From positions 248,001 to 312,000 of IMG/VR virus record IMGVR_UViG_3300031857_000002: a DNA stretch of 64,000 nucleotides; one strand, written 5' to 3'. Of the stretch, positions 28,235 through 41,311 are shown one piece after another. Made by a program: the position numbers and the translations under genes. The notes beneath the pieces were generated by a model that made no database searches, had not been told where the DNA came from, and saw only the letters and a program-made list of their open reading frames with translations. How positions within the stretch are numbered: position 1 is the stretch's first letter; every line of letters begins with the position of its first letter.

Positions 28235-29236
28235 TTACTTGATCTGTGTCCAAACACGCTCACGGATCTGCTTTGTTAAACTGTCTGGCAGTGCCACATA
28301 GTCTAAGTCTGCGGCATCTTTCTTGCCATTCTTGAATGCCCAATCAAAGAATTTTAGTACTTCATCGCTGGTGGCTTTGCTCTTTGGCTCTTTGTACATG
28401 ATGATGAAACTGGCTGAACTTACTGGCCAAGCATTGGGGTTCTTTTGATCCACAATGCTCAATCCCATACCAGGAACACTAAACCAATCAGCACCGTCTG
28501 CCGCGGCTGCAAATGTTAGGTCATCTGGGCTAACATATTTGCCTGACTTGTTTTGTAACTGTAGGAATACCATATTGTTTTTCTTAACATAAGCATACTC
28601 TACATAACCAATTGAACCTTTGATACGGTTCACATTGGCAGCAACACCTTCATTGCCCTTGCCCCCTACACTATTTGGTGAGGGCCATTTAACTGCGGCA
28701 CCACGACCTACTTTAGCTAGCCACTCAGGACTTACTGTAGCAAGATAGTCGGTCCAGTTGAATGTGGTGCCAGAACCGTCGGCACGGTGAACCACTGTGA
28801 TCAGTTCGTTAGGCAAATTTTTGCCTGGATTCAATGCCACCAACTTAGGATCATTCCATCTAGCAATAGTACCCATGAATACTTCAGCCATAACTGGGCC
28901 GGTGATACGTAGTTCTCCAGGCTTGACGCCGTCTAAGTTAACTACTGGAACAGTGCCGCCAATGATGGCAGGAAATTGAACCTGACCGTTTTTGTCTAGG
29001 TCTTCACCTTTGACTGGAGCATCAGTTGCACCAAAGTCTACGGTCTTTGCGTTGATTTGTCTAATGCCACCTGAACTACCAATGCTTTGATAGTTCAAAC
29101 TGTTGCCAGTTGCTTTCTTGTATCCTTCTGCCCATTTAGAATAGATAGGCATTGGAAAAGTTGCACCAGCACCTGTAATGTCTGCGTTTGCTGAAAATGT
29201 TACTGCGGTTAATAAGATTGCTAGTAGTTTGTTCAC
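28235..29236 (-). CDS. pstS: phosphate ABC transporter substrate-binding protein
   Basis: GAGATFP, YQSIGSSGG, DFGATD, RADGSGTT, GKGNEGV. Confidence 0.96.
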   Translation of the reverse strand: MNKLLAILLTAVTFSANADITGAGATFPMPIYSKWAEGYKKATGNSLNYQSIGSSGGIRQINAKTVDFGATDAPVKGEDLDKNGQVQFPAIIGGTVPVVNLDGVKPGELRITGPVMAEVFMGTIARWNDPKLVALNPGKNLPNELITVVHRADGSGTTFNWTDYLATVSPEWLAKVGRGAAVKWPSPNSVGGKGNEGVAANVNRIKGSIGYVEYAYVKKNNMVFLQLQNKSGKYVSPDDLTFAAAADGADWFSVPGMGLSIVDQKNPNAWPVSSASFIIMYKEPKSKATSDEVLKFFDWAFKNGKKDAADLDYVALPDSLTKQIRERVWTQIK

Positions 29237-29278
29237 TGAGTTCTCCTTGTTGTGACAAGATTATTTAAGGAGAATAAT

Positions 29279-29296
29279 ATTACAGTTTTATTACAA
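29279..29296 (-). promoter_or_regulatory. Pho box upstream of pstS
   Basis: TTGTAAT-AAAA-CTGTAAT 11-bp direct repeat, 11 nt before TAAATA. Confidence 0.75.
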
Positions 29297-29298
29297 AA

Positions 29299-30021
29299 TT
29301 ATGACCAATATTTGGATGAATCTAAACTGTCCCAGTATTTCTTGTTATTTCGGTTAATAAAGTTCTTGATTAGATACTTGCCCATTCCAAGATATCCCAT
29401 CTTCTTGAATCTACGACTATCCTGTCCAAAGTGATGTCGAACAATTTTAAACTTTCGAGGACTATACTTCCTTGACAAAAAGTAATCCTCAGAGGTTGCA
29501 AACTGTTCAGGAAACCCGCCAAACTCGTCAAACTTATCTTTGCGTGTTAGCATGAATGCACCAACTGCAAAAGGTGAGAAAAATTTCAGTGTGTGATTTA
29601 TGGTATTAAAAAGAGTGAATCCAACTATGGCCCGCATGTCACGATCATAACATTTGATGTTTAGCCCAACCAGGTCTAGATTCTTTGATTGAATTTTGTC
29701 AACTGCATCTTGAATCACAGTATTTTTAAAGAAGCGAACGTCAGCGTCAATAAACAAGATATAAGGAGTAGTGACTAATCTTGCTCCGTTGTTCTTGGCA
29801 ACACTAACAGGGCCACCATCAATGATTTCAACGTTCAATCCTGAGCTGTTATCTTGTATAACTTGTCTAGTATTGTCAGATGAACAATCAGCAATAATAA
29901 TTCTAGTGTCACCAATGTTTTGTGCTCGCAATGAGTTTAACAAATGATGAATATAATTTTCTTCATTCTTGCAAGGTACTACTATAGTGATTTTGTCACT
30001 TAATTTTGTTGTCGTTTGCAT
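29299..30021 (-). CDS. glycosyltransferase family 2
   Basis: IVVPCKNE, ADCSSD, ILFIDAD (DxD), FGGF...SED. Confidence 0.92.
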   Translation of the reverse strand: MQTTTKLSDKITIVVPCKNEENYIHHLLNSLRAQNIGDTRIIIADCSSDNTRQVIQDNSSGLNVEIIDGGPVSVAKNNGARLVTTPYILFIDADVRFFKNTVIQDAVDKIQSKNLDLVGLNIKCYDRDMRAIVGFTLFNTINHTLKFFSPFAVGAFMLTRKDKFDEFGGFPEQFATSEDYFLSRKYSPRKFKIVRHHFGQDSRRFKKMGYLGMGKYLIKNFINRNNKKYWDSLDSSKYWS

Positions 30022-30176
30022 TGTCCTTCAACCTTAAAATTGTTAAATTTTAACTGCCACTTCATTGACGCCAGTGTCATTTCGCAACTGATCTGGTCCT
30101 TGAATGCCAGTTCTATTCTTCCTGGCACGTCCTGAGGATTGTTCACGTGAACCGCTATTAATATCAGTAACCACAT
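30000..30176 (-). CDS. small secreted protein
   Basis: MWLLILIAV..., Cys pair; GGAG upstream; overlaps plcP tail. Confidence 0.55.
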   Translation of the reverse strand: MWLLILIAVHVNNPQDVPGRIELAFKDQISCEMTLASMKWQLKFNNFKVEGQCKRQQN

Positions 30177-30924
30177 TGTCTTTCTCCCGAGTCCAAGTAA
30201 TGATTTCCCAATGGCCATCCCAGTGTTCTACAAGTGCTGTACATGATTCAACCCAGTCGCCATCATTCATGTATGTTACACCGTTGATTTCTTTTATTTC
30301 TGCATGGTGTATGTGTCCACAGATCACGCCATCAAATCCACGCTTCTTGCAATAGTCTGCTAGATTTTCTTCAAACTTGAATATAAAGTCTACTGCTTTT
30401 TTAACTTTGTGCTTAAGAAACTTGCTAAGGCTAAAGTACCCAAAACCCAAGCGACGACGAATCCAATTAAATTTATTGTTGAGGCCAAGAACAAAGTCAT
30501 AGGCTTTATCTCCTAAGAATGCTATCCAAGGTGCCAGTCTAGTAATACCATCAAACAAGTCACCGTGGACAACTAAGTAGTGCTTACCATCAGCACCTAT
30601 ATGTTCTATTTGATTGTGTATTTCTATTAGACCAAAACTGAAACCATAGGGTATCATGGGTCTTAGGAATTCATCGTGATTGCCTGCAATGAATACAACT
30701 CTAGTGCCACGCTTGGCATGACCTAGCACACGACGAACAACATTGGTGTGGCTCTGTTTCCAACGCCATTTGTTTTGTTGTATACGCCAGGCGTCGATGA
30801 TATCCCCTACCAGGTAGAGTGTATCACATGAGTTGTGTTTGAGAAAGTTATTGAGGCGATCGGCTTGACAATCTTTGGTTCCAAGATGGACATCACTGAC
30901 AAAGATTGAGCGATATGTCTTCAT
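30043..30924 (-). CDS. plcP: PlcP-type phospholipase C (LpxH-like metallophosphoesterase)
   Basis: YRSIFVSDVHLG, LVGDIID, GNHDE, HGDLFD, CGHIH, NDGDWVESCTALVE; PlcP-like LGD.AYD...SLS.FLK.KVK.AV.FI..FE segment. Confidence 0.8.
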   Translation of the reverse strand: MKTYRSIFVSDVHLGTKDCQADRLNNFLKHNSCDTLYLVGDIIDAWRIQQNKWRWKQSHTNVVRRVLGHAKRGTRVVFIAGNHDEFLRPMIPYGFSFGLIEIHNQIEHIGADGKHYLVVHGDLFDGITRLAPWIAFLGDKAYDFVLGLNNKFNWIRRRLGFGYFSLSKFLKHKVKKAVDFIFKFEENLADYCKKRGFDGVICGHIHHAEIKEINGVTYMNDGDWVESCTALVEHWDGHWEIITWTREKDNVVTDINSGSREQSSGRARKNRTGIQGPDQLRNDTGVNEVAVKI

Positions 30925-30945
30925 CTATTATTTAAGATGATGACT

Positions 30946-30963
30946 ATTACAATTTTATTACAG
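30946..30963 (-). promoter_or_regulatory. Pho box upstream of plcP
   Basis: CTGTAAT-AAAA-TTGTAAT, again 11 nt before TAAATA. Confidence 0.75.
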
Positions 30964-30971
30964 AAACTAGA

Positions 30972-31625
30972 CTACTCAGGTACTCTGGTCCAGGCTATGA
31001 GTGCTCGTTTGCCCGGGATACCATTTGCTAGAAAGTTGTCACTGGTGTGAAACTTGAATCTAGCGGCAGCAAACATACTGCCTTTCTTCCACTTGAAGAT
31101 ATCTTCTATGGTAAACCAGTCAAACAAATCACCGGGAATGTGACTGAAATACTGTTGTCTTGTGGCAGCATCTATTGTGGGATTTTCATACGGCGGCACA
31201 TCTTTTGTGTACTCATGTGGTTCTTTGATGATGCTGCCTTCCTTGAACACTATGGTATGGCTGTCATAGGTGTCCAAGGGAATGATCAAGGTCCAAGCGG
31301 GCACAGTGGGTTCGGGACTTTTTTTCCAGCCACTGGCCACATCGCTGTGAACTCGATAAGGATCAACACAGTCAAAAATGTGTATTTGTTCAAAGAACAG
31401 GTCCTGACCAAATGCCTCTTGAAACTTGGGTGCCAGTATTTCAACTACCTTGGCAAAGTGTGAGTCATAGTAATCAAACACATAATAGTCACCGGACTTG
31501 ACAATTTCTCCTGACGGCGTGGGGTTGAAATTTTCATGCGGCTTCACTGCCATGACCATGGATTCAATAGTGTCTATTTCAGCATCAGACAAAAAGTTGT
31601 CAATAATTTTTGAGTCAAAGTTCAT
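30972..31625 (-). CDS. 2OG-Fe(II) oxygenase-like protein
   Basis: IIDNFLS start, HSD (HxD), distal FH, C-terminal KR. Confidence 0.65.
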   Translation of the reverse strand: MNFDSKIIDNFLSDAEIDTIESMVMAVKPHENFNPTPSGEIVKSGDYYVFDYYDSHFAKVVEILAPKFQEAFGQDLFFEQIHIFDCVDPYRVHSDVASGWKKSPEPTVPAWTLIIPLDTYDSHTIVFKEGSIIKEPHEYTKDVPPYENPTIDAATRQQYFSHIPGDLFDWFTIEDIFKWKKGSMFAAARFKFHTSDNFLANGIPGKRALIAWTRVPE

Positions 31626-31633
31626 GTGCATAT

Positions 31634-31921
31634 TTACATCAACATACGAATCAGACCCACACTGTCAATAGTGGTCAACAGTATATAGTTAGCCAGCATG
31701 CCAAAAGATTTCCTAGTCCAACTAGCCCAAGCATACAAACCACAGCCAAGGATCCACACAGGGTAAAGAGCAAGAAGCGGAGGCGTGGGTACGGTAAGTG
31801 CCATGACAATTGAACAACCAATACTAATACCCCAAGCAAGCAACTCAATAACAAAGCGAGTTCGGTTGGACTTAAAATCATCTCGTATCCAGTCAAATGT
31901 GTTAAGCAATATATCGTTCAT
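31634..31921 (-). CDS. small 3-TM membrane protein
   Basis: Hydrophobic helices. Confidence 0.75.
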   Translation of the reverse strand: MNDILLNTFDWIRDDFKSNRTRFVIELLAWGISIGCSIVMALTVPTPPLLALYPVWILGCGLYAWASWTRKSFGMLANYILLTTIDSVGLIRMLM

Positions 31922-32921
31922 AAACTTGTTCGCTGGCTAAATTCTTGCCTTTGGCTTCGCATTGAATATCAAAGTTGTTAGCAAAGGTCAGAGCCCAATC
32001 AGTCACAGCGTCATTCCAATAGAAGTCGCTGTGGGCTCGTAGTTTCTGTTTCTTATAACCTCTAGCAAGAAGTTCAGCAAGATCGGGTCTAGTTCCTCGG
32101 TCATGGTCAACCAAAACGTCCTCGCGACTAACACTATAATGAAGTGCAGGACGAGTGCCGCGCCAAGAGTCAATAACCCGCTTGACGCGATCGTCCTGCG
32201 CGGTGATGTACTCTCCCGAGTTAATCCAGTGGTGGTGTAGGTCCAATACAAGAGCCACATGCTGAGCCACAGCCAAAGTAGTGTCAAGTCCATTTGTCAT
32301 CTCATCATTCTCGATGGTAATTAAGTTTCTTGCTTCGGGGCTGAGTCTACCCAAAGTACGCAAGAATTTAGCGGGACCACCTTTACCGCTCAAGTGTACG
32401 TTGATCTTAAAGCCGTTATCGTGCCAGGTATTACCATAACCCATCCAACGTGCCATATCAGCGTGGTATTCAAATTCTAGTATGCTACGTTCTACAATCT
32501 CATCTGCTTCGCTTGCTAGTACACAAAACTGGCCAGGATGAAAGCTCAAACGCACACCGTATTTACGTGCGGCTTCGCCAATTGGGGCAAAAATCTTTGC
32601 ACAGTGATCCTGAATTTCTTGGCGTTGCCACCATGCAATCCAGTTGGGCTCAGTGTAGCCCTGTAGCATTTCGCTACCAAGACGTACCATTCTACGTTCA
32701 ACGGGCAATGTGGCCACACGTTCAATCATCCGCACAGCCGCTGACGCATTGTGATTCATGATGTCCCATTGTCTCTGGTCTGCTTCGTTGGCATGTTCGC
32801 GAAGCCACCTCATGGTAGTTGATCTGCCGTTTAGGTCACGGTCCACTGCGTTGACTTTCATGCCACCACATTCAGTAGGGTCATTAAGCCATTTGCAACA
32901 AAAGCCAATTCGTGTGTTCAT
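31902..32921 (-). CDS. uvsE: UV damage endonuclease
   Basis: RIGFCC, RLSFHPGQF, IENDE, LDLHHH, HYS, AHSD, EAKGK; TTGACT-17-TATAAT at 32928-32956. Confidence 0.9.
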   Translation of the reverse strand: MNTRIGFCCKWLNDPTECGGMKVNAVDRDLNGRSTTMRWLREHANEADQRQWDIMNHNASAAVRMIERVATLPVERRMVRLGSEMLQGYTEPNWIAWWQRQEIQDHCAKIFAPIGEAARKYGVRLSFHPGQFCVLASEADEIVERSILEFEYHADMARWMGYGNTWHDNGFKINVHLSGKGGPAKFLRTLGRLSPEARNLITIENDEMTNGLDTTLAVAQHVALVLDLHHHWINSGEYITAQDDRVKRVIDSWRGTRPALHYSVSREDVLVDHDRGTRPDLAELLARGYKKQKLRAHSDFYWNDAVTDWALTFANNFDIQCEAKGKNLASEQVYERYIA

Positions 32922-32952: not shown

Positions 32953-33876
32953 TCAACTTCTTGCTTGCCGAACTAGATCTAATGTGACGCAATGGAATCC
33001 ACCACCCAATGTTCGACTGTGACGTAGTTCCAACGGAATTACCGTAAATCGATAACTTTCCAGTGTTTTGATCAATTCGGTTTGGTGCCGGTCCACAATC
33101 ACAGTTTCTGGATCCACTGTAAGCATGTTCATTGCTATCCATTTTGAAGCATACGGATAGCCGTAAAAACTCTGTGGTACTACATTGTTAATCCAAATCT
33201 TTTGCCAACCTTCAAACACCCGTGGCACATTATCAAAATTCACACGACTGGCATTGAGCATGACCAGGCCTTCACGCAGGGCCACAATAGTTGAATCAAT
33301 GTGAACTCCGGCATAAAAATTGCACATCTCTATTGTGACATTGGGAAATTGATCGCATAACCAATTGTAAGCTGATTTGCTGCCTGATGCACTTTCCAAG
33401 AACAGCATCTTGTTTGGGCCCAAACGCAACACATTGGCAGCATCTAATACCATGTCACCGCCACGTGGCATGTGTCGGATTTCGCCAGCATAGGTCAATA
33501 TGTCGTGATAGCACTGATATTCCATGTCTCTACAGGGATACATCATAGCAGGGTCAATCACTACATCACCGTGTACAATAAACCGATCTCTAGGACAATA
33601 GTTGTACAAGCCATCGTGGGCCTGAAAATTCATGTTCTCTGGGCGTAGTACTTCTACACCCAAGTTACCCAGTGTGTTGGCCAAGGTATCTAGATCTTCA
33701 TTGGCTTCGTCTATGATCCAGTCTGGCACAGGTCCTGACGGCACAGGTGATTCTGTCCATGTGGTCTTTTGGCTCTCCAAGCTAAACACAGGATCGTGAA
33801 CGGGCCAATTGGCGTGATCTGCACGACCAACCACAATCTTTTTCAGTGGATCCCACTCATTAAATGTGCTTATCAT
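32953..33876 (-). CDS. amidinotransferase (glycine/inosamine-phosphate amidinotransferase family)
   Basis: NEWDPL, YCPRD, DAAN, HIDST, GGGFHCVT (Asp-His-Cys triad). Confidence 0.9.
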   Translation of the reverse strand: MISTFNEWDPLKKIVVGRADHANWPVHDPVFSLESQKTTWTESPVPSGPVPDWIIDEANEDLDTLANTLGNLGVEVLRPENMNFQAHDGLYNYCPRDRFIVHGDVVIDPAMMYPCRDMEYQCYHDILTYAGEIRHMPRGGDMVLDAANVLRLGPNKMLFLESASGSKSAYNWLCDQFPNVTIEMCNFYAGVHIDSTIVALREGLVMLNASRVNFDNVPRVFEGWQKIWINNVVPQSFYGYPYASKWIAMNMLTVDPETVIVDRHQTELIKTLESYRFTVIPLELRHSRTLGGGFHCVTLDLVRQARS

Positions 33877-34391
33877 ACGTGTCCTGTAATTTGCAATGTA
33901 TATCGATCTTCCAGCCCAATATTGGCAGCCATGTGTGGTGCATCGTACACCCATTCTACAGTTGTACCTGCTGTCCATTTTACATAAGGCTGACCAATAA
34001 CTTCTAGGTAGTGCCCTGATTGCCAGTCCTCTAACAACACTAATGCACGTCGGATTGACTGTTCTTGTCCTTGCAGATTAAACAATTCAATGTAACGTTT
34101 GTACAGGTCTTGATGTACCGGCATTACAGTACCTGTGGGCATGCGATAAAACGCAAGACCAATATCTTTCCATCCCATCTCAGTATAGATCTTAATAAAC
34201 TTATCAGCCCATGCTGGTAAACGATGGCGCATGTCGCAAAGATCCCCGCATATTTTAGTGTGATATCCTTGTGCTAACCACTGAGACACGCTGACAGGAT
34301 CGTTAAAAGGCTCCTGAATGTAATCAAGAGCCTTAAACTCATCGTCCCAGAATACAGGAAGATGATACTTATTGACCACGTGTGTTGCCAT
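33873..34391 (-). CDS. 2OG-Fe(II) oxygenase-like protein
   Basis: MPVHQD (HxD), PHMAAN, RYTLQIT. Confidence 0.75.
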   Translation of the reverse strand: MATHVVNKYHLPVFWDDEFKALDYIQEPFNDPVSVSQWLAQGYHTKICGDLCDMRHRLPAWADKFIKIYTEMGWKDIGLAFYRMPTGTVMPVHQDLYKRYIELFNLQGQEQSIRRALVLLEDWQSGHYLEVIGQPYVKWTAGTTVEWVYDAPHMAANIGLEDRYTLQITGHV

Positions 34392-35607
34392 AGTGAACAA
34401 CCTTAACATCTGGGGTAGATGTCAGTTTGCGCCATGGGTCAACAATGATACTGCCCTTGGGGATGTCACAGTAGGCTTGTGTGTCTTGTTGCTCGCCTGT
34501 GTATTCGTAAGTGATCTTGCGATTGTGTGCCCACAAAAACACAGCAGGGCCGGCAACTTCCTTAATAACTTCGTCTTGGTTGTCTGCCAAGGGATCAACA
34601 TAGCGCACATTAAATCCAGCTTGTTTGACATAGTGTCCAACCAAGGTAGAATAGCTACCAATACAGTATTCAACGTCTGGTTTGTAGGCTTTGCCATGAA
34701 TCACAACACTCATGCCATTTTGTTTGGCTTGTTCTACCAGGAACAATGCCAGATTCTTGGCTTGGATTTCACGAGCATGCATGATTGTGTCAAACAAGTC
34801 ATATCCTACTTCGTAGTGTTCTGCTAACCAACGAAGTGCAATATTATCACGTGGATGACAAGCACCTGCATCTCCCATGCCTGCTGTCATGTACTTGGGA
34901 CCTTGTAGTCGCATGGTGCTTCGTGCCAAGGCGTTTGTAACAACGTCAACGTTGATGTTGCCAATCTTCATAGCAAAGTCTTGAATCATGTTAACAATAC
35001 CAACCTTGGCCGAGATGTAGGTGTTGTAGAAGATCTTGATAGCTTCACATTCGTCCCAGGTGCCAATTTCGTAACGTGGGTCGTTGTTCATGATTGTTTT
35101 GTACAACGCAATCAACTCACCTGCAATACCTGTAAGCTCGCCATCTTCTGTGCCAATGATAACCATCTCAGGATTGGCCATGTCCCACTTCACTGATCCC
35201 ATGGCAATGAGGTAAGGATTGTACAAGAATTGATGTTTGGGGTCTAGCAATGTAATAAACTTGCTACGTGTGGTACCAGGTAGCACCGTAGAAATCAACA
35301 CAACTTTCTTGCTGGTCTTGGCATGTTGGTTGACTTTGTTGATGGCATCAATCACCGCATCGTGGCCAAAGTCCTTGGGGGTCATGTGACTTGATGGGAC
35401 TGATCCATCATATCCTTCTGCGTGTGGGGTTGGCACAGCAATAAAGATCCATTCGCTTTCATTGACCAACTCGTCAATGTCGCAAACTTTTACAGTGTCG
35501 CTAGTACGTGGGTAAATATCATAACCCCGCACTGTGTGCTTTTCTGCCATAACTTCGGCGCAATCAAGGCCAAGTTTACCGATACCGATAAATCCAATTT
35601 TTTTCAT
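34369..35607 (-). CDS. ugd: UDP-glucose/GDP-mannose 6-dehydrogenase family
   Basis: GIGKLG, IAVPTP, EAIKIFYN, GACHPRD, AYKPD. Confidence 0.88.
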   Translation of the reverse strand: MKKIGFIGIGKLGLDCAEVMAEKHTVRGYDIYPRTSDTVKVCDIDELVNESEWIFIAVPTPHAEGYDGSVPSSHMTPKDFGHDAVIDAINKVNQHAKTSKKVVLISTVLPGTTRSKFITLLDPKHQFLYNPYLIAMGSVKWDMANPEMVIIGTEDGELTGIAGELIALYKTIMNNDPRYEIGTWDECEAIKIFYNTYISAKVGIVNMIQDFAMKIGNINVDVVTNALARSTMRLQGPKYMTAGMGDAGACHPRDNIALRWLAEHYEVGYDLFDTIMHAREIQAKNLALFLVEQAKQNGMSVVIHGKAYKPDVEYCIGSYSTLVGHYVKQAGFNVRYVDPLADNQDEVIKEVAGPAVFLWAHNRKITYEYTGEQQDTQAYCDIPKGSIIVDPWRKLTSTPDVKVVHYGNTRGQ

Positions 35608-35610
35608 ATT

Positions 35611-36918
35611 ATGAGTGTTCCTTTAGATAGATTATACAATCACTTAGACAGTTTATGCAACCATGATGCTTTAATTTATCGCTTTTATCCGCATGGCTCA
35701 AAAAAACTTGAAGATATACATCCCTTGTATGATTTCTCTCAACGTGGATGGCAGTATCAAATTGGAACTCCAGGCATGCTGTGTCATGATCAGGAACCGC
35801 TGATGTTTGATCAGTATTCTAATCATGACATGTTGAATTATTTTGTGCATTATAACCCAGCAGTACTTGATGATACCAAAGCTGTTAATCGACTAAAAGA
35901 GTTAATCAATACGCAACATTTGCGATCAATGACCTGGTCACGGCATGGCATATACGACACCACGCTGTTGTTACACAGTGAAAAACACAGTGAAAATCTT
36001 GCCCGGTATGAACAAGTGGGATTTATAGGAGTATACTGGTGGGCACATGCCGCTATTGCCAATGATTGGTACCGATATGCCAAACATGATCCTGAGCTTG
36101 CAGTTAATTTTAACAATATCAGCCAGGATTTTTTGGTATACAATCGTGCCTGGACCGGCACACGAGAATATCGACTGAAATTTACCGAACTAGTAATCAA
36201 TTTAGATCTTCAATCCCGTTGTCTCATGAAGTTTTCTACCACCTGCGACGGGCAGCACTATTCTAAATTTAATTTTAAAAATCCAACATTGGCAATATCA
36301 CAACATGATTTAGAAGCACACTTTGATCCGTGCACCATCAATGCTACTGCTAGTGCAGATTACCATGCGCCGGATTACGCACACACTGGAATAGAGATTG
36401 TGTTAGAAACATTGTTTGATGATACACGATGGCACCTAACTGAAAAGTCACTTAGACCAATTGCCTGTGGTAGGCCTTTTATGCTAGCAGGCACCCCAGG
36501 TAGTTTAGAATATCTCAGGAGTTACGGGTTTGAAACGTTTGGCAACTTGATTGACGAGTCCTACGATCAAATTGCAAACTCAGTTGAGAGACTGCAATGC
36601 ATCACTGCGGAAATGTCACGTATTAGTAAGTTGCCACAAAAACAAAAACTTCAGCTATGGCAATCCTTGTATGAAATTGCAGACCGTAACAAACAGTTAT
36701 TTTTTAGTGACGCATGGCAACAACAAATTTTTGATGAGTTTGTCAGCAACTTTAATCAAAGTATTTCTATCATGGAACATTGCAAAACAGGGCAGCATTG
36801 GTTGAAATTTCGAGATGCGTGGATTGCATGCCCTGATCAATTCAAACTTGCTGACCCAGTAATATTAGAAAGTATGTTACATCAAGAAGAAGTTGAACAA
36901 CTGTTAAATCGTACTTAA
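35611..36918 (+). CDS. hypothetical protein, possibly glycosyltransferase-related
   Basis: Start MSVPLD; HDQEP and IVLET...LTEKSLRPI...PF...LRSYGFETF..IDESYD pattern. Confidence 0.7.
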   Translation: MSVPLDRLYNHLDSLCNHDALIYRFYPHGSKKLEDIHPLYDFSQRGWQYQIGTPGMLCHDQEPLMFDQYSNHDMLNYFVHYNPAVLDDTKAVNRLKELINTQHLRSMTWSRHGIYDTTLLLHSEKHSENLARYEQVGFIGVYWWAHAAIANDWYRYAKHDPELAVNFNNISQDFLVYNRAWTGTREYRLKFTELVINLDLQSRCLMKFSTTCDGQHYSKFNFKNPTLAISQHDLEAHFDPCTINATASADYHAPDYAHTGIEIVLETLFDDTRWHLTEKSLRPIACGRPFMLAGTPGSLEYLRSYGFETFGNLIDESYDQIANSVERLQCITAEMSRISKLPQKQKLQLWQSLYEIADRNKQLFFSDAWQQQIFDEFVSNFNQSISIMEHCKTGQHWLKFRDAWIACPDQFKLADPVILESMLHQEEVEQLLNRT

Positions 36919-37271
36919 ATTGATTTTATGTATACTCCAGTCCAGTTGGGTCCTGGGGGATTGTTCCTGAATGCTCGAACACGATTTTGTATTTCTTCAT
37001 AGAACGTGTCTACTGTGCCGCCCCACTTGCCCTTGAGTTCTTCAAGTGCTTGCTCACAAAAATCCCAATGCTGTTCACGATAGTATTTAATCACATCTGC
37101 ATGCAGTTTCTTGTGTGCTTCGATTAATGGGAATTCATTCAGGGGAATTTTCTCTACTACACAATAAGCGGTAAATGGTTCTGCTCCGGGCTTGACACAG
37201 ATGGTATCTAGTTCTAGTACTGTATGCCCATTGGGCATCAATTTAACAGCTTCTCCAAATATAATGTTCAT
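36915..37271 (-). CDS. protein resembling the C-terminal tail of class III adenylate cyclases
   Basis: LELDTICVK...AY...YREQHW...NPP..NWTGV; no full catalytic domain. Confidence 0.55.
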   Translation of the reverse strand: MNIIFGEAVKLMPNGHTVLELDTICVKPGAEPFTAYCVVEKIPLNEFPLIEAHKKLHADVIKYYREQHWDFCEQALEELKGKWGGTVDTFYEEIQNRVRAFRNNPPGPNWTGVYIKSI

Positions 37272-37292: not shown

Positions 37293-38087
37293 ATGATGAA
37301 TTTTAATTTTGACTTAATTTCTGATTTACATATTGAAACCTGGTCTGAAGAAATAGATTGGACCGGCATTGCTACCAGCCCTGTGTGCGTGGTTGTTGGA
37401 GATATATCTAAGGACAGAAATATTGTAACCCGTGTGTTGACCAAACTTGGTCAATGTTATCAAGCTGTATTTTACATAGATGGCAACGACGAGCATCATG
37501 ATTACTTGCATAAACTTGGGTATAGTTACGCTGATCTAGTGAGCCGCGTTAACAACATACCCAATGTAGTTTATTTACAAGACAATGTTGTAGTAATTGA
37601 TGGAGTGGCTATCCTAGGTACCAATGGCTGGTGGGGGTTTGATTTTGATCTAGGAATCGACTATGTCAGCAGCCAAGAATGGTATCGTGAAAAATTTGGC
37701 TTGACTGCAGAAGCAACCCATGCAATATCTCGTATGGCCAACAATGATGCCATGTACATGATCAACTCAGTCAAGAGAATACAAACACACCAAGACGTTA
37801 AAAAGATTGTAATGATTACACATACTGTGCCAGATCCTGTGCTGATTGAACACGATATTGATCTAGAAGGCAAACTAAAGTTCAACACCATGGGCAACAG
37901 ATACATGAAACAGGTGTTAGAAGTTGATACTGAGAAAAAACTACATACCTGGTGTTTTGGACACTATCATGGTTCGATTGATCAAACTCGCAACGGCATC
38001 AGATATGTGAACAACTGTCGCGGCAGGGGTGACACACCTTATGGTAAACATGTGTACTACCCCTTGCGAATCACTGTGAGTTATTGA
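37293..38087 (+). CDS. calcineurin-like metallophosphoesterase
   Basis: SDLH, GD, GNDEH, THTVP, FGHYH. Confidence 0.88.
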   Translation: MMNFNFDLISDLHIETWSEEIDWTGIATSPVCVVVGDISKDRNIVTRVLTKLGQCYQAVFYIDGNDEHHDYLHKLGYSYADLVSRVNNIPNVVYLQDNVVVIDGVAILGTNGWWGFDFDLGIDYVSSQEWYREKFGLTAEATHAISRMANNDAMYMINSVKRIQTHQDVKKIVMITHTVPDPVLIEHDIDLEGKLKFNTMGNRYMKQVLEVDTEKKLHTWCFGHYHGSIDQTRNGIRYVNNCRGRGDTPYGKHVYYPLRITVSY

Positions 38088-39121: not shown

Positions 39122-39580
39122 TTAGGAAGTGTATGTGATAGCAATAGTCTTTGGCTTGGCTTCTTCAGGTATTTCACGCTTTAGGTGAATGCTTAGGATA
39201 CCAAGTTCAAGATGTGCTCCGGTAATTTCCACATGGTCCGCTAGTTGGAATTCTCTACGGAAACTACGCTCACTGATTCCTTTGTGCAGGTATTTTGCAG
39301 TCGAATCTTCATTCTCCACAGTTTCACGACTGTGCTTGCCTTCAATAACCAAGATTTTTTTATCCTTGGTCACTGACAGATTGTCGTAGCCAAAACCAGC
39401 CACAGCCACGCTGATCATGTACTCGTCATCATTGACTTGTACAATATCATAAGGTGGATAGTTTGTTGAGCTTTGTTGAGCATTTACACGCATGAGTTCA
39501 TCAAACATGTTATCAAACCCGATACCAAATTTGGTGAGTGCGGGAATGTCGAAAGAGCGAAGGGTGAGAGTTTTTGTCAT
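39122..39580 (-). CDS. small heat shock protein Hsp20 (IbpA-like)
   Basis: IGFD, NYPPYDI, AVAGF, YLHKGIS.RSF.REF.LA, GILSI.L. Confidence 0.95.
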   Translation of the reverse strand: MTKTLTLRSFDIPALTKFGIGFDNMFDELMRVNAQQSSTNYPPYDIVQVNDDEYMISVAVAGFGYDNLSVTKDKKILVIEGKHSRETVENEDSTAKYLHKGISERSFRREFQLADHVEITGAHLELGILSIHLKREIPEEAKPKTIAITYTS

Positions 39581-40120: not shown

Positions 40121-41311
40121 TTAGAGCTCCTTAGGACTATTTACCAGGGCTTGATCAATATCTACGTGCTTAATTCCGTCTGTGCGATAACGTGCTAGAT
40201 TGTACATGTGCGGCAACAACACACGTTCTAGTTCTGAATGCAGGCCACGAGCGCCTGTTTTGTTTTTGATTGTGCGTTCTGCAATGAGATCCAGGCTGTC
40301 TGCAGTAAACTCAAGGTCAACTTCGTCTTGCTTGAACAACCACTGGTACTGACTTATGTAATTGTGCTTGACTTCATTAAGGATACGTACCAGGGCTGTT
40401 TTATCCAGCTCTTTGAGCGCAACCCAAGCAGGGAAGCGACCTACAAATTCTGGGATTAATCCAAATCGCACTAGGTCATCTGGCGTGGTCTTTGACAGGT
40501 GTAACTGCCCGTCTGTTTTGCTAGAAACTTCTGCACCAAATCCAATGTTGGTGCCTTGCACACGACTCTTGACAATGTTGTCTAGTCCAACAAATGCACC
40601 GCCTGCAATGAACAAGATGTTTGTGGTGTCAATTTCAATAGTGTCGCCCGACGGGTGTTTTCTGCCACCAGTGGGCATGACTCTACACTTGGTGCCTTCT
40701 ACCAGTTTGAGCAAGGCTTGTTGTACGCCCTCGCCTGACACATCTCTTGTGATACTGGTGCCTTCGCTCTTACGAGAGATCTTGTCAATCTCGTCCACAA
40801 ACACAATACCACGTTGTGTTTTGTCAACATCGCCGCCCGCGGCAGCATACAATCGACTGATCAAACTTTCAACATCATCGCCCACATAGCCTGCTTCTGT
40901 TAGGCTAGTAGCATCTGCAATCACAAATGGCACATCTAAATAACGTGCCACAGTTTTGGCCAGTAATGTTTTGCCTGACCCTGTTGGACCAAGCATGAGA
41001 ATGTTAGCTTTTTCAATTTCAGTGTTAGGGTCTTTGTTACGAATGCGTTTGTAGTGATTGGCAATGGCCACACTCAGCAACATCTTGGCATCGTCTTGTC
41101 CAATCACATATTGATCCAAATGCTTTCGAATTTCTCTTGGATCAAGATTGGGCGAAGCATCTGATATTTCAGGTTTATCTACCAACAGTGTTTGGCACAA
41201 GTCCACACACTCATTGCATATTGCAACACCTTCACCCACAATGAGTTTAGTCACTGTGTCTTTGTGTTTGTTACAAAAACTACAGGTGTCAAGATTATCG
41301 GATGTTTTCAT
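40121..41311 (-). CDS. clpX: ATP-dependent Clp protease ATP-binding subunit ClpX
   Basis: C4 zinc finger, [32 protein letters not shown] loop. Confidence 0.96.

Follow-up and report, generated by a model that had tools for sequence, protein, structure and literature searches.

What might a virus make with a nucleotide-sugar dehydrogenase, a 2-oxoglutarate (2OG)-dependent oxygenase and an arginine amidinotransferase, encoded by three overlapping genes that face a fourth gene for a glycosyltransferase-like protein? Such a cassette lies in the 64,000-nucleotide stretch analysed here (the window), bases 248,001-312,000 of the IMG/VR virus record IMGVR_UViG_3300031857_000002, which is 320,175 bp long and 92% complete. 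Sugar-tailoring clusters are common in large aquatic phages, with the product known for almost none, and amidinotransferases are seldom encountered except in secondary metabolism and creatine synthesis. We read the locus, tentatively, as a conserved phage glycoconjugate-tailoring cassette that adds a guanidino group, a reading that we regard as quite possible, if just short of probable. A known superfamily can be named for every enzyme, by membership or by fold. In the literature searched, however, no description was found of their combination, of the head-to-head layout or of the family of the fourth protein, which has a type B glycosyltransferase (GT-B) fold.

Gene order and linkage across relatives

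The genes for the dehydrogenase, the oxygenase and the amidinotransferase (AmT1) follow one another with overlaps of 23 nt and 4 nt, the second being an ATGA in which the AmT1 start lies over the oxygenase stop (Table 1). On the opposite strand, the gene for a 435-residue protein, p435, begins at 35611, only 3 bp from the dehydrogenase start at 35607. A preliminary description of this DNA had reported three overlapping genes and a divergent fourth one 3 bp away, and both the listing of open reading frames (ORFs) and direct reading of the sequence confirm it. The N-termini of p435 and the dehydrogenase are conserved from residue 1, and the oxygenase start at 34391 is the one kept by most relatives. 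A longer amidinotransferase of 341 residues (the longest ORF, start 33978) was ruled out, as the ATG at 33876 is conserved in 13 of 14 relatives.

The same arrangement is found in other phage genomes. All 14 IMG/VR loci recovered through the amidinotransferase carry the dehydrogenase, oxygenase and amidinotransferase genes in order with the p435 gene facing them, and in 13 of them most of the length of a p435 orthologue could be recovered. The module is intact even in two loci with different flanks (L015 and L016). An independent set collected through p435 comprised 80 loci, 68 of which had enough upstream sequence to be evaluated. All three partners are present in 47, the oxygenase and amidinotransferase only in 14, the dehydrogenase and oxygenase in one, and none in six, at least one of these six being a paralogue in a genome that has the full cassette elsewhere. 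The oxygenase and amidinotransferase together stand head-to-head with p435 in 61 of the 68, with a spacing of about -2 to +13 bp where the dehydrogenase comes first and of 4-31 bp where the oxygenase does. Such recurrence is far beyond chance, and a failure of the genes to co-occur in relatives, which the preliminary description had named as grounds for abandoning its pathway, is not what we find.

The dehydrogenase is the least fixed of the partners. Because 14 of the loci keep the oxygenase and amidinotransferase without it, the core of the cassette is the GT-B protein, the oxygenase and the amidinotransferase, and the dehydrogenase is a movable supply gene. Three genomes with a cassette of this shorter kind were checked, and all of them have the dehydrogenase elsewhere, in two cases within 7-9 kb of a gene for a DegT aminotransferase. 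Ugd, DegT, AmT1 and a second amidinotransferase (AmT2, see below) are all present in the five related genomes searched. Measured against the window proteins over 41 loci, median identity falls from 80% (dehydrogenase) through 66% (amidinotransferase) and 61% (oxygenase) to 47% (p435), and the head-to-head layout persists over p435 identities of 34-62%. Of the four, p435 diversifies fastest, which we read as the mark of a changing acceptor.

At the junction of the two outward-facing starts, the dehydrogenase ATG is preceded by AAGGA at a distance of 11 nt and by TATAAT at about 23 nt, both within codons 3-9 of p435. They are a putative ribosome-binding site and a putative -10-like element of the dehydrogenase operon, placed inside the opposing gene. 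Among 50 distinct loci (the p435-alone and dehydrogenase-less classes left out; the dehydrogenase abuts p435 in most), AAGGA occurs in 34 and TATAAT in 31, and neither occurs in any of five loci with a lone p435, despite the same peptide, MxxP(L/I)DxLY. The p435 codon choice CCT/TTA/AGA/TTA is retained in most start-abutting loci and lost where p435 is alone, and in many relatives the two start codons touch (CATATG). A scan of sigma-70 promoters and terminators gave counts not above those of shuffled sequence. Contigs of relatives in three metatranscriptome libraries span all four genes, which is weak evidence and does not by itself prove transcription.

Table 1. Positions of the cassette genes, their neighbours and the related clusters; window coordinates unless stated otherwise.
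Feature	Position	Strand	Basis or remark
AmT1, StrB1-type L-arginine amidinotransferase, 307 aa	32953-33876	-	PDB homology, catalytic motifs, conserved start
2OG/Fe(II) oxygenase, 172 aa, PHD/P4H-like double-stranded beta-helix	33873-34391	-	fold, HxD...H triad
NDP-sugar 6-dehydrogenase, divergent, Ugd-like, 412 aa	34369-35607	-	PF03721, PF00984, phrog_9148, aligned catalytic residues
p435, GT-B-fold glycosyltransferase-like, 435 aa	35611-36918	+	predicted fold, virus-dominated family
Head-to-head junction	35608-35636	-	AAGGA 35623-35619; TATAAT 35636-35631; direct sequence reading
UvdE homologue (UV-damage endonuclease)	31902-32921	-	PF03851 at 2e-31; PDB matches exclusively UVDE
118-aa gene	36915-37271	-	conserved downstream neighbour of p435
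Metallophosphoesterase	37293-38087	+	conserved downstream neighbour of p435
Hsp20 small heat-shock protein	39122-39580		just upstream of cassette region; conserved in relatives
ClpX, full-length, with zinc finger	40121-41311		just upstream of cassette region; conserved in relatives
PstS phosphate-binding protein, GT2 glycosyltransferase, LpxH-like metallophosphoesterase	28235-31631
Second cluster, ~25 kb, outside window	genome 96.6-121.7 kb		L024:2565-7644, L022:1020-12338, L025:1483-2613, L108:761-1729
AmT3, third amidinotransferase paralogue	L023:5666-7515 (genome 203,666-205,515)		overlaps APS-kinase-like P-loop protein

The four proteins

AmT1 matches the aminocyclitol enzyme StrB1, the scyllo-inosamine-4-phosphate amidinotransferase of Streptomyces griseus, over its full length (1bwd; E 3.5e-62, query residues 1-303), and AGAT (about 1e-27), HsvA and SxtG at E values of about 1e-22 to 5e-28. 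Its PRD, DAAN, HIDS and GGGFHC motifs align with those of StrB1 and are invariant across AmT1 orthologues, so that the intact Cys, His and Asp residues reported in the preliminary description are borne out. These motifs are shared by StrB1, AGAT, CyrA and SxtG, as are the arginine-binding Arg and Ser, which, at the positions we take them to hold in AGAT, align with the R and S of NASRV and YASKW in AmT1. Curated models score below threshold (PF02274, the ADI family, 16 bits against a cut-off of 22.8; NF045659, 18.9 bits). However, the Pfam and NCBIfam libraries do not cover the AmT1 subfamily, and PDB homology is therefore the stronger test of family. Judged by these alignments, AmT1 is a catalytically intact enzyme closest to StrB1, and StrB1-type chemistry would be expected of it, with L-arginine and a primary amine giving ornithine and a guanidino product. 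It differs from StrB1 in being about 40 residues shorter, in lacking a 15-23-residue segment before DAAN that StrB1 and the bacterial homologues have, and in its context, that of a phage, where it is accompanied by genes for a GT-B protein and a 2OG oxygenase and by no streptomycin genes. The nearest true cellular relatives share 33-41% identity. Five matches at 59-76% that come from metagenome-assembled genomes (MAGs) represent the phage module itself, and the module-bearing contigs in MAGs with bacterial labels (L028-L032 and L078; Haliscomenobacter, Terrimicrobiaceae, Legionella, Bacteroidetes and Chloroflexota) almost certainly stem from phages and were mis-binned.

The dehydrogenase scores above the Pfam cut-offs in its N-terminal UDPG_MGDP_dh domain (PF03721, 54.5 bits) and its central domain (PF00984, 52.1 bits), and matches phrog_9148 at 8.8e-85. 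Its C-terminal domain is weak (PF03720, 17.3 bits against a cut-off of 30). TIGR03026 gives 134 bits against 189.8, and all other NCBIfam subfamily and equivalog models also fall below their cut-offs, the equivalogs far below. Alignment to UDP-glucose dehydrogenase 4a7p reveals that GxGxxG (residues 7-12), the Lys/Asn pair and the catalytic Cys-x-x-x-Asp (GACHPRD) are kept. With its NAD-binding and central domains and catalytic Cys, Lys, Asn and Asp, the protein is, by alignment, a member of the UDP-glucose/GDP-mannose dehydrogenase family.

The oxygenase has no Pfam match. Its double-stranded beta-helix fold, HxD...H iron triad and RxT 2OG-binding motif place it in the 2OG/Fe(II) family, and the same three features are found in the small prolyl hydroxylase-type (PHD/P4H) and PF05118 (AspH/LpxO-type) oxygenases. 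It is set apart from these by its near-minimal size and by the amidinotransferase gene that follows through the ATGA overlap. When structural neighbours that differ by at most 1 Z unit are counted as ties, PHD/P4H enzymes come out ahead of AlkB; the neighbours also include PolD, PasI, HygX and AviO1, which act on sugar antibiotics. Homologues of the oxygenase number about 2,000 in metagenomes.

The predicted model of p435 (pLDDT 85.7) has two facing Rossmann-like domains in a GT-B arrangement, followed by a long C-terminal helical extension (residues ~320-435), and the Foldseek and VIA lists consist mostly of GT-B enzymes. A GT-B fold in 35611-36918 is what the preliminary description had proposed to look for, and its term "glycosyltransferase-like" is upheld at the level of the fold. 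Sequence searches gave no match in Pfam, NCBIfam, PHROG or the PDB, a profile search of the PDB gave none either, and there is no protein relative in 50,697 isolate phage records. A profile search of 1.84 billion representatives returned 14,292 clusters for the family at E <= 0.001, of which 2,084 reach E <= 1e-30. Relatives in the ESM Atlas and BFVD come nearly all from uncultured tailed phages. The evidence supports p435 as the representative of an undescribed, virus-dominated family with a predicted GT-B fold.

The residues D60, E266, E278-K279 in (T/S)EK 277-279, G306, D315, D319 and R327 are invariant in orthologues and distant paralogues alike. Among them, ExxF...(T/S)EK (ETxF...(T/S)EK) partly resembles the GT10 nucleotide-sugar motif, which we take to be FxxxFENS...YxTEK. 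Membership of GT10 (PF00852) was rejected, given the lack of a Pfam match, the partial motif and an ESM Atlas lead of 0.79 that is below the reliable level. Thus, p435 may act like a GT10 enzyme, yet it is not filed as one. Compared with T4 beta-glucosyltransferase (1c3j), the GT10 alpha-1,3-fucosyltransferases (5zoi/8d0o) and the GT90 enzyme POGLUT (5l0r), p435 shows no detectable sequence similarity and is set apart by its C-terminal helical extension and its acidic isoelectric point (pI 5.2-6.0 across the family). A T4-type DNA glucosyltransferase (BGT/AGT) is a DNA-binding enzyme that goes with a hydroxymethyl-pyrimidine pathway, and p435 does not fit that description.

Some long proteins of the p435 family from the representative search were considered as dehydrogenase fusions and rejected; they are tandem duplications instead, with two GT-B-like units per 680-740-aa protein (P0144 and P0257). 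A 788-aa protein of an uncultured tailed phage in BFVD, A0A6J5TB28, combines an annotation as the N-terminal domain of the dehydrogenase with a p435 fold match (352 columns, E 7e-13). It may fuse the dehydrogenase and p435 activities, and a true fusion would tie the two functionally.

Related clusters and genomic surroundings

A second cluster in the same genome encodes seven Pfam-supported radical SAM/SPASM proteins (SPASM is N-terminal to the radical SAM core in four of them), a carbamoyltransferase, three p435 paralogues, AmT2, a DegT aminotransferase and a short-chain dehydrogenase/reductase (SDR); for its 1132-aa ORF no informative relative was found. AmT2 (genome 113,082-114,101) directly adjoins two p435 paralogues, and an AmT2-type gene lies 4-9 kb from the DegT gene in this genome and five relatives. 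The SDR beside DegT is closest to enzymes that act on UDP-glucuronic acid, 4-epimerases and decarboxylases (6zl6, UXS1). The top DegT match is annotated as a glutamine:scyllo-inositol transaminase (inosose aminotransferase), the other best matches are sugar 3-aminotransferases, and the PDB matches include ArnB and WbpE, the latter acting on a uronic acid. Given these SDR and DegT matches, what the dehydrogenase makes could plausibly be converted into a sugar that bears an amine. The third amidinotransferase paralogue, AmT3, has a 2OG-like paralogue 3 kb away; in both AmT2 and AmT3, Asn replaces the DAAN Asp of AmT1 and StrB1.

Similar modules were found in other phages. A 27-kb phage-like contig binned as Chloroflexota (L078) carries a p435-like gene, a B12 radical SAM gene, a 2OG oxygenase, an amidinotransferase (37% identity) and a second p435-like gene, as well as a carbamoyltransferase. 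Its PF13640 oxygenase was considered as an orthologue of the cassette oxygenase and rejected; as the two are not detectably homologous at profile level, it is a positional analogue. In Synechococcus phage S-SCSM2R, an oxygenase (30% identical) and an amidinotransferase (37%) homologous to those of the cassette follow each other as they do here (ORF308-309). Around them are five glycosyltransferases, one DegT-like gene and one radical SAM gene, and the authors of the S-SCSM2R paper named these homologues "antibiotic synthesis genes" (PMC12801897). In Campylobacter phages CP220 and CPt10, the amidinotransferase lies among five radical SAM and two GT-A genes, a "radical SAM plus glycine amidinotransferase" module unexplained since 2010 (PMC2853527). 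The gene upstream of the CP220 amidinotransferase was examined as an oxygenase relative and proved unrelated. The S-SCSM2R and Campylobacter phage modules resemble the cassette in that a phage amidinotransferase is found among oxidative tailoring enzymes and glycosyltransferases, and differ from it in having neither p435 homologues nor the dehydrogenase.

In the window, the UvdE gene adjoins the cassette in most loci and is 3.7 kb away in L015 and L016; it is probably a backbone gene and not a cassette member. The 118-aa gene and metallophosphoesterase, which match phrog_1649 and TIGR03729, are present in most loci and absent from L015 and L016, and are no more than candidate members of the cassette. 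The PstS match reaches 403 bits and so clears the equivalog cut-off. The GT2 and LpxH-like pair changes position around the cassette among relatives, and in L013 and L014 the LpxH-like gene adjoins p435, alongside GT4 and GATase-like genes.

The parent genome has a T4-type major capsid gene, and at least ten studies of lakes and other fresh waters yielded metagenomes with near-identical copies of the module sequence. The five related records are 320-347 kb long, three of them complete with direct terminal repeats. From the size of these relatives, the capsid gene and the freshwater occurrence, it follows that the clade is one of very large freshwater T4-like myoviruses. The label "cyanophage" was dropped since, despite the T4-type capsid gene, neither psbA nor psbD was found in the 92%-complete genome and the source is lakes. 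The G+C content of the module (0.43-0.46) is unremarkable against that of the whole window (0.40-0.49), genetic code table 11 sufficed, and the window holds no tRNA genes. A search of the cassette DNA against the 50,697 isolate phage records returned a dehydrogenase fragment at ~70% identity as its sole match. Beyond PstS, the clade encodes periplasmic solute-binding proteins of the TctC (two in this genome) and DctP types (L108:9076-9990, L023:10741-11700, L015:1265-2236), which might aid identification of the host.

A candidate pathway and its rivals

How might these enzymes act together? From their families, intact catalytic motifs, folds and linkage, we infer a donor, an acceptor, an order of steps and a target. 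The Ugd-like dehydrogenase would make an NDP-uronic acid, and the DegT aminotransferase and SDR encoded elsewhere in the genome would turn such sugars into amino sugars, the amine probably being made there. AmT1 would move the amidino group of L-arginine to a primary amine of the sugar or of a sugar-linked substrate to form a guanidino group. The oxygenase, translationally coupled to AmT1, would hydroxylate or otherwise oxidise the same substrate. Finally, p435 would use a nucleotide sugar, either transferring the product sugar or glycosylating the modified acceptor. Parts of this route have a chemical analogy in bacteria, where WbpA/B/E of Pseudomonas make UDP-ManNAc3NAcA (an acetamidino variant exists) and ArnA/ArnB make UDP-Ara4N. 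As in those systems, a Ugd-family dehydrogenase followed by SDR and DegT steps would lead to an amino sugar with a free amine. Unlike in those systems, the phage DegT and SDR genes are ~160 kb from the cassette. We know of no pentein-type amidinotransferase in bacterial amino-uronic acid pathways.

The guanidino and uronic sugar pathway of the preliminary description fares well on co-occurrence, on the GT-B fold, on the intact StrB1-like enzyme and on the sugar-rich genome, and less well on the dehydrogenase, which is not obligatory. Several observations weigh against it and against our own version of it. The cassette itself has no aminotransferase, and the amine acceptor is therefore a guess. 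The dehydrogenase is absent from the cassette in 14 of the 68 loci. Cellular relatives of AmT1 adjoin genes for nonribosomal peptide synthetase (NRPS) adenylation-carrier proteins, ATP-grasp ligases, ornithine/diaminopimelate decarboxylases, methyltransferases, ABC exporters and lysine 2,3-aminomutase, not sugar genes; family membership thus gives no sugar acceptor, and solely the phage contexts point there. Sequence links p435 to no characterised glycosyltransferase family, and its role is a predicted one. Linkage of genes in phages can reflect common timing of expression and not a common pathway. To our knowledge, no homologue has a known product, target or phenotype.

In a different explanation, the four genes are unlinked auxiliary metabolic genes. 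The amidinotransferase and oxygenase would redirect the way in which the host handles arginine, guanidine or nitrogen, unrelated envelope roles would fall to the dehydrogenase and GT-B protein, and the linkage would reflect co-expression only. The amino-acid contexts of the cellular amidinotransferases, nutrient-acquisition neighbours such as PstS and the separable dehydrogenase are all in keeping with it. However, it does not sit well with a head-to-head layout that survives both the divergence of p435 and changed flanks, nor with AmT2 again adjoining p435 paralogues in the same genome and L078 repeating the trio of oxygenase, amidinotransferase and p435-like gene, and we give it only a slim chance. 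Even if the genes do form one pathway, the data single out none of the targets that the preliminary description had listed (virion, DNA or host surface). We rank a virion or host-surface glycan first, followed by a small molecule, a hydroxylation-glycosylation mark on protein and, last, DNA. In the second of these, the cassette, together with the second cluster and its radical SAM, carbamoyltransferase, DegT and SDR enzymes, would make a soluble guanidinylated, carbamoylated glycoside, similar to an aminoglycoside or streptothricin, that acts during infection, for instance by countering rival phages or by affecting host translation. Among solved structures, the one closest to AmT1 is indeed that of a streptomycin enzyme, the top DegT annotation is an inositol transaminase, the oxygenase has neighbours from sugar-antibiotic pathways, the name given to the S-SCSM2R homologues points the same way, and a repertoire of amidinotransferase, carbamoyltransferase, radical SAM, GT-B, DegT and SDR enzymes fits aminoglycoside-type pathways in general. 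Nonetheless, Pfam and NCBIfam scans, which did not amount to a systematic search for the streptomycin pathway, revealed no inositol-phosphate synthase, exporter or self-resistance gene near the cassette, and no phage is known to produce such a compound. Of the aminotransferase, kinase and phosphatase steps that surround the amidinotransferase in a streptomycin-type pathway, these scans showed just the DegT aminotransferase, which is encoded elsewhere in the genome. The many paralogous, fast-evolving GT-B genes (median identity 47% against 80% for the dehydrogenase) fit diversification at the phage-host interface better, and we consider a small molecule unlikely. Similarly improbable, in our estimate, is a broader scheme in which the cassette and the second cluster form one viral pathway for a guanidinylated, carbamoylated pseudo-oligosaccharide, either soluble and aminoglycoside- or streptothricin-like or a cationic virion glycan, with the GT-B family as assembly enzymes.

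A protein could also be the target. The oxygenase would hydroxylate a residue in some protein of the phage or its host, and this residue would be O-glycosylated by the GT-B enzyme, in the way that AspH and POGLUT act on EGF domains or lysyl hydroxylase and a glycosyltransferase on collagen, with the amidinotransferase modifying the sugar or working apart. The structural neighbours that suggest this are within 1 Z unit of others and count as ties, and PF05118 also includes enzymes that hydroxylate lipid A and Kdo. With no candidate substrate protein linked to the cassette, and no precedent for a StrB1-type enzyme acting on proteins, we think protein modification rather improbable. For DNA, the oxygenase would hydroxylate a base, the GT-B enzyme would glycosylate it in the manner of T4 beta-glucosyltransferase, possibly with uronic acid, and the amidinotransferase would decorate the product. 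The lead of BGT over GT-B enzymes of proteins and glycans in the p435 comparison falls within a tie, and the oxygenase resembles PHD/P4H above AlkB, with no TET/JBP enzyme among its structural matches. DNA is the least likely target because no ThyA-type hydroxymethylase was found in the 92%-complete genome, the entire GT-B family is acidic and a uronic acid has no amine for the amidinotransferase; we hold DNA hypermodification to be very unlikely.

The favoured reading, a cassette that tailors a glycoconjugate, concerns a module that is compact, strongly conserved and widespread, and whose chemistry is unusual. The analysis also defines a large family with a glycosyltransferase fold that is missing from current domain libraries. 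The same theme is found in Campylobacter phages and in a cultured Synechococcus phage, and one biochemical solution could explain genes that have been puzzling since 2010. A cationic guanidino-glycan on the virion or host surface, if that is the product, would represent a new kind of chemistry at the phage-host interface; a small molecule would instead be an antibiotic-like compound made by a virus.

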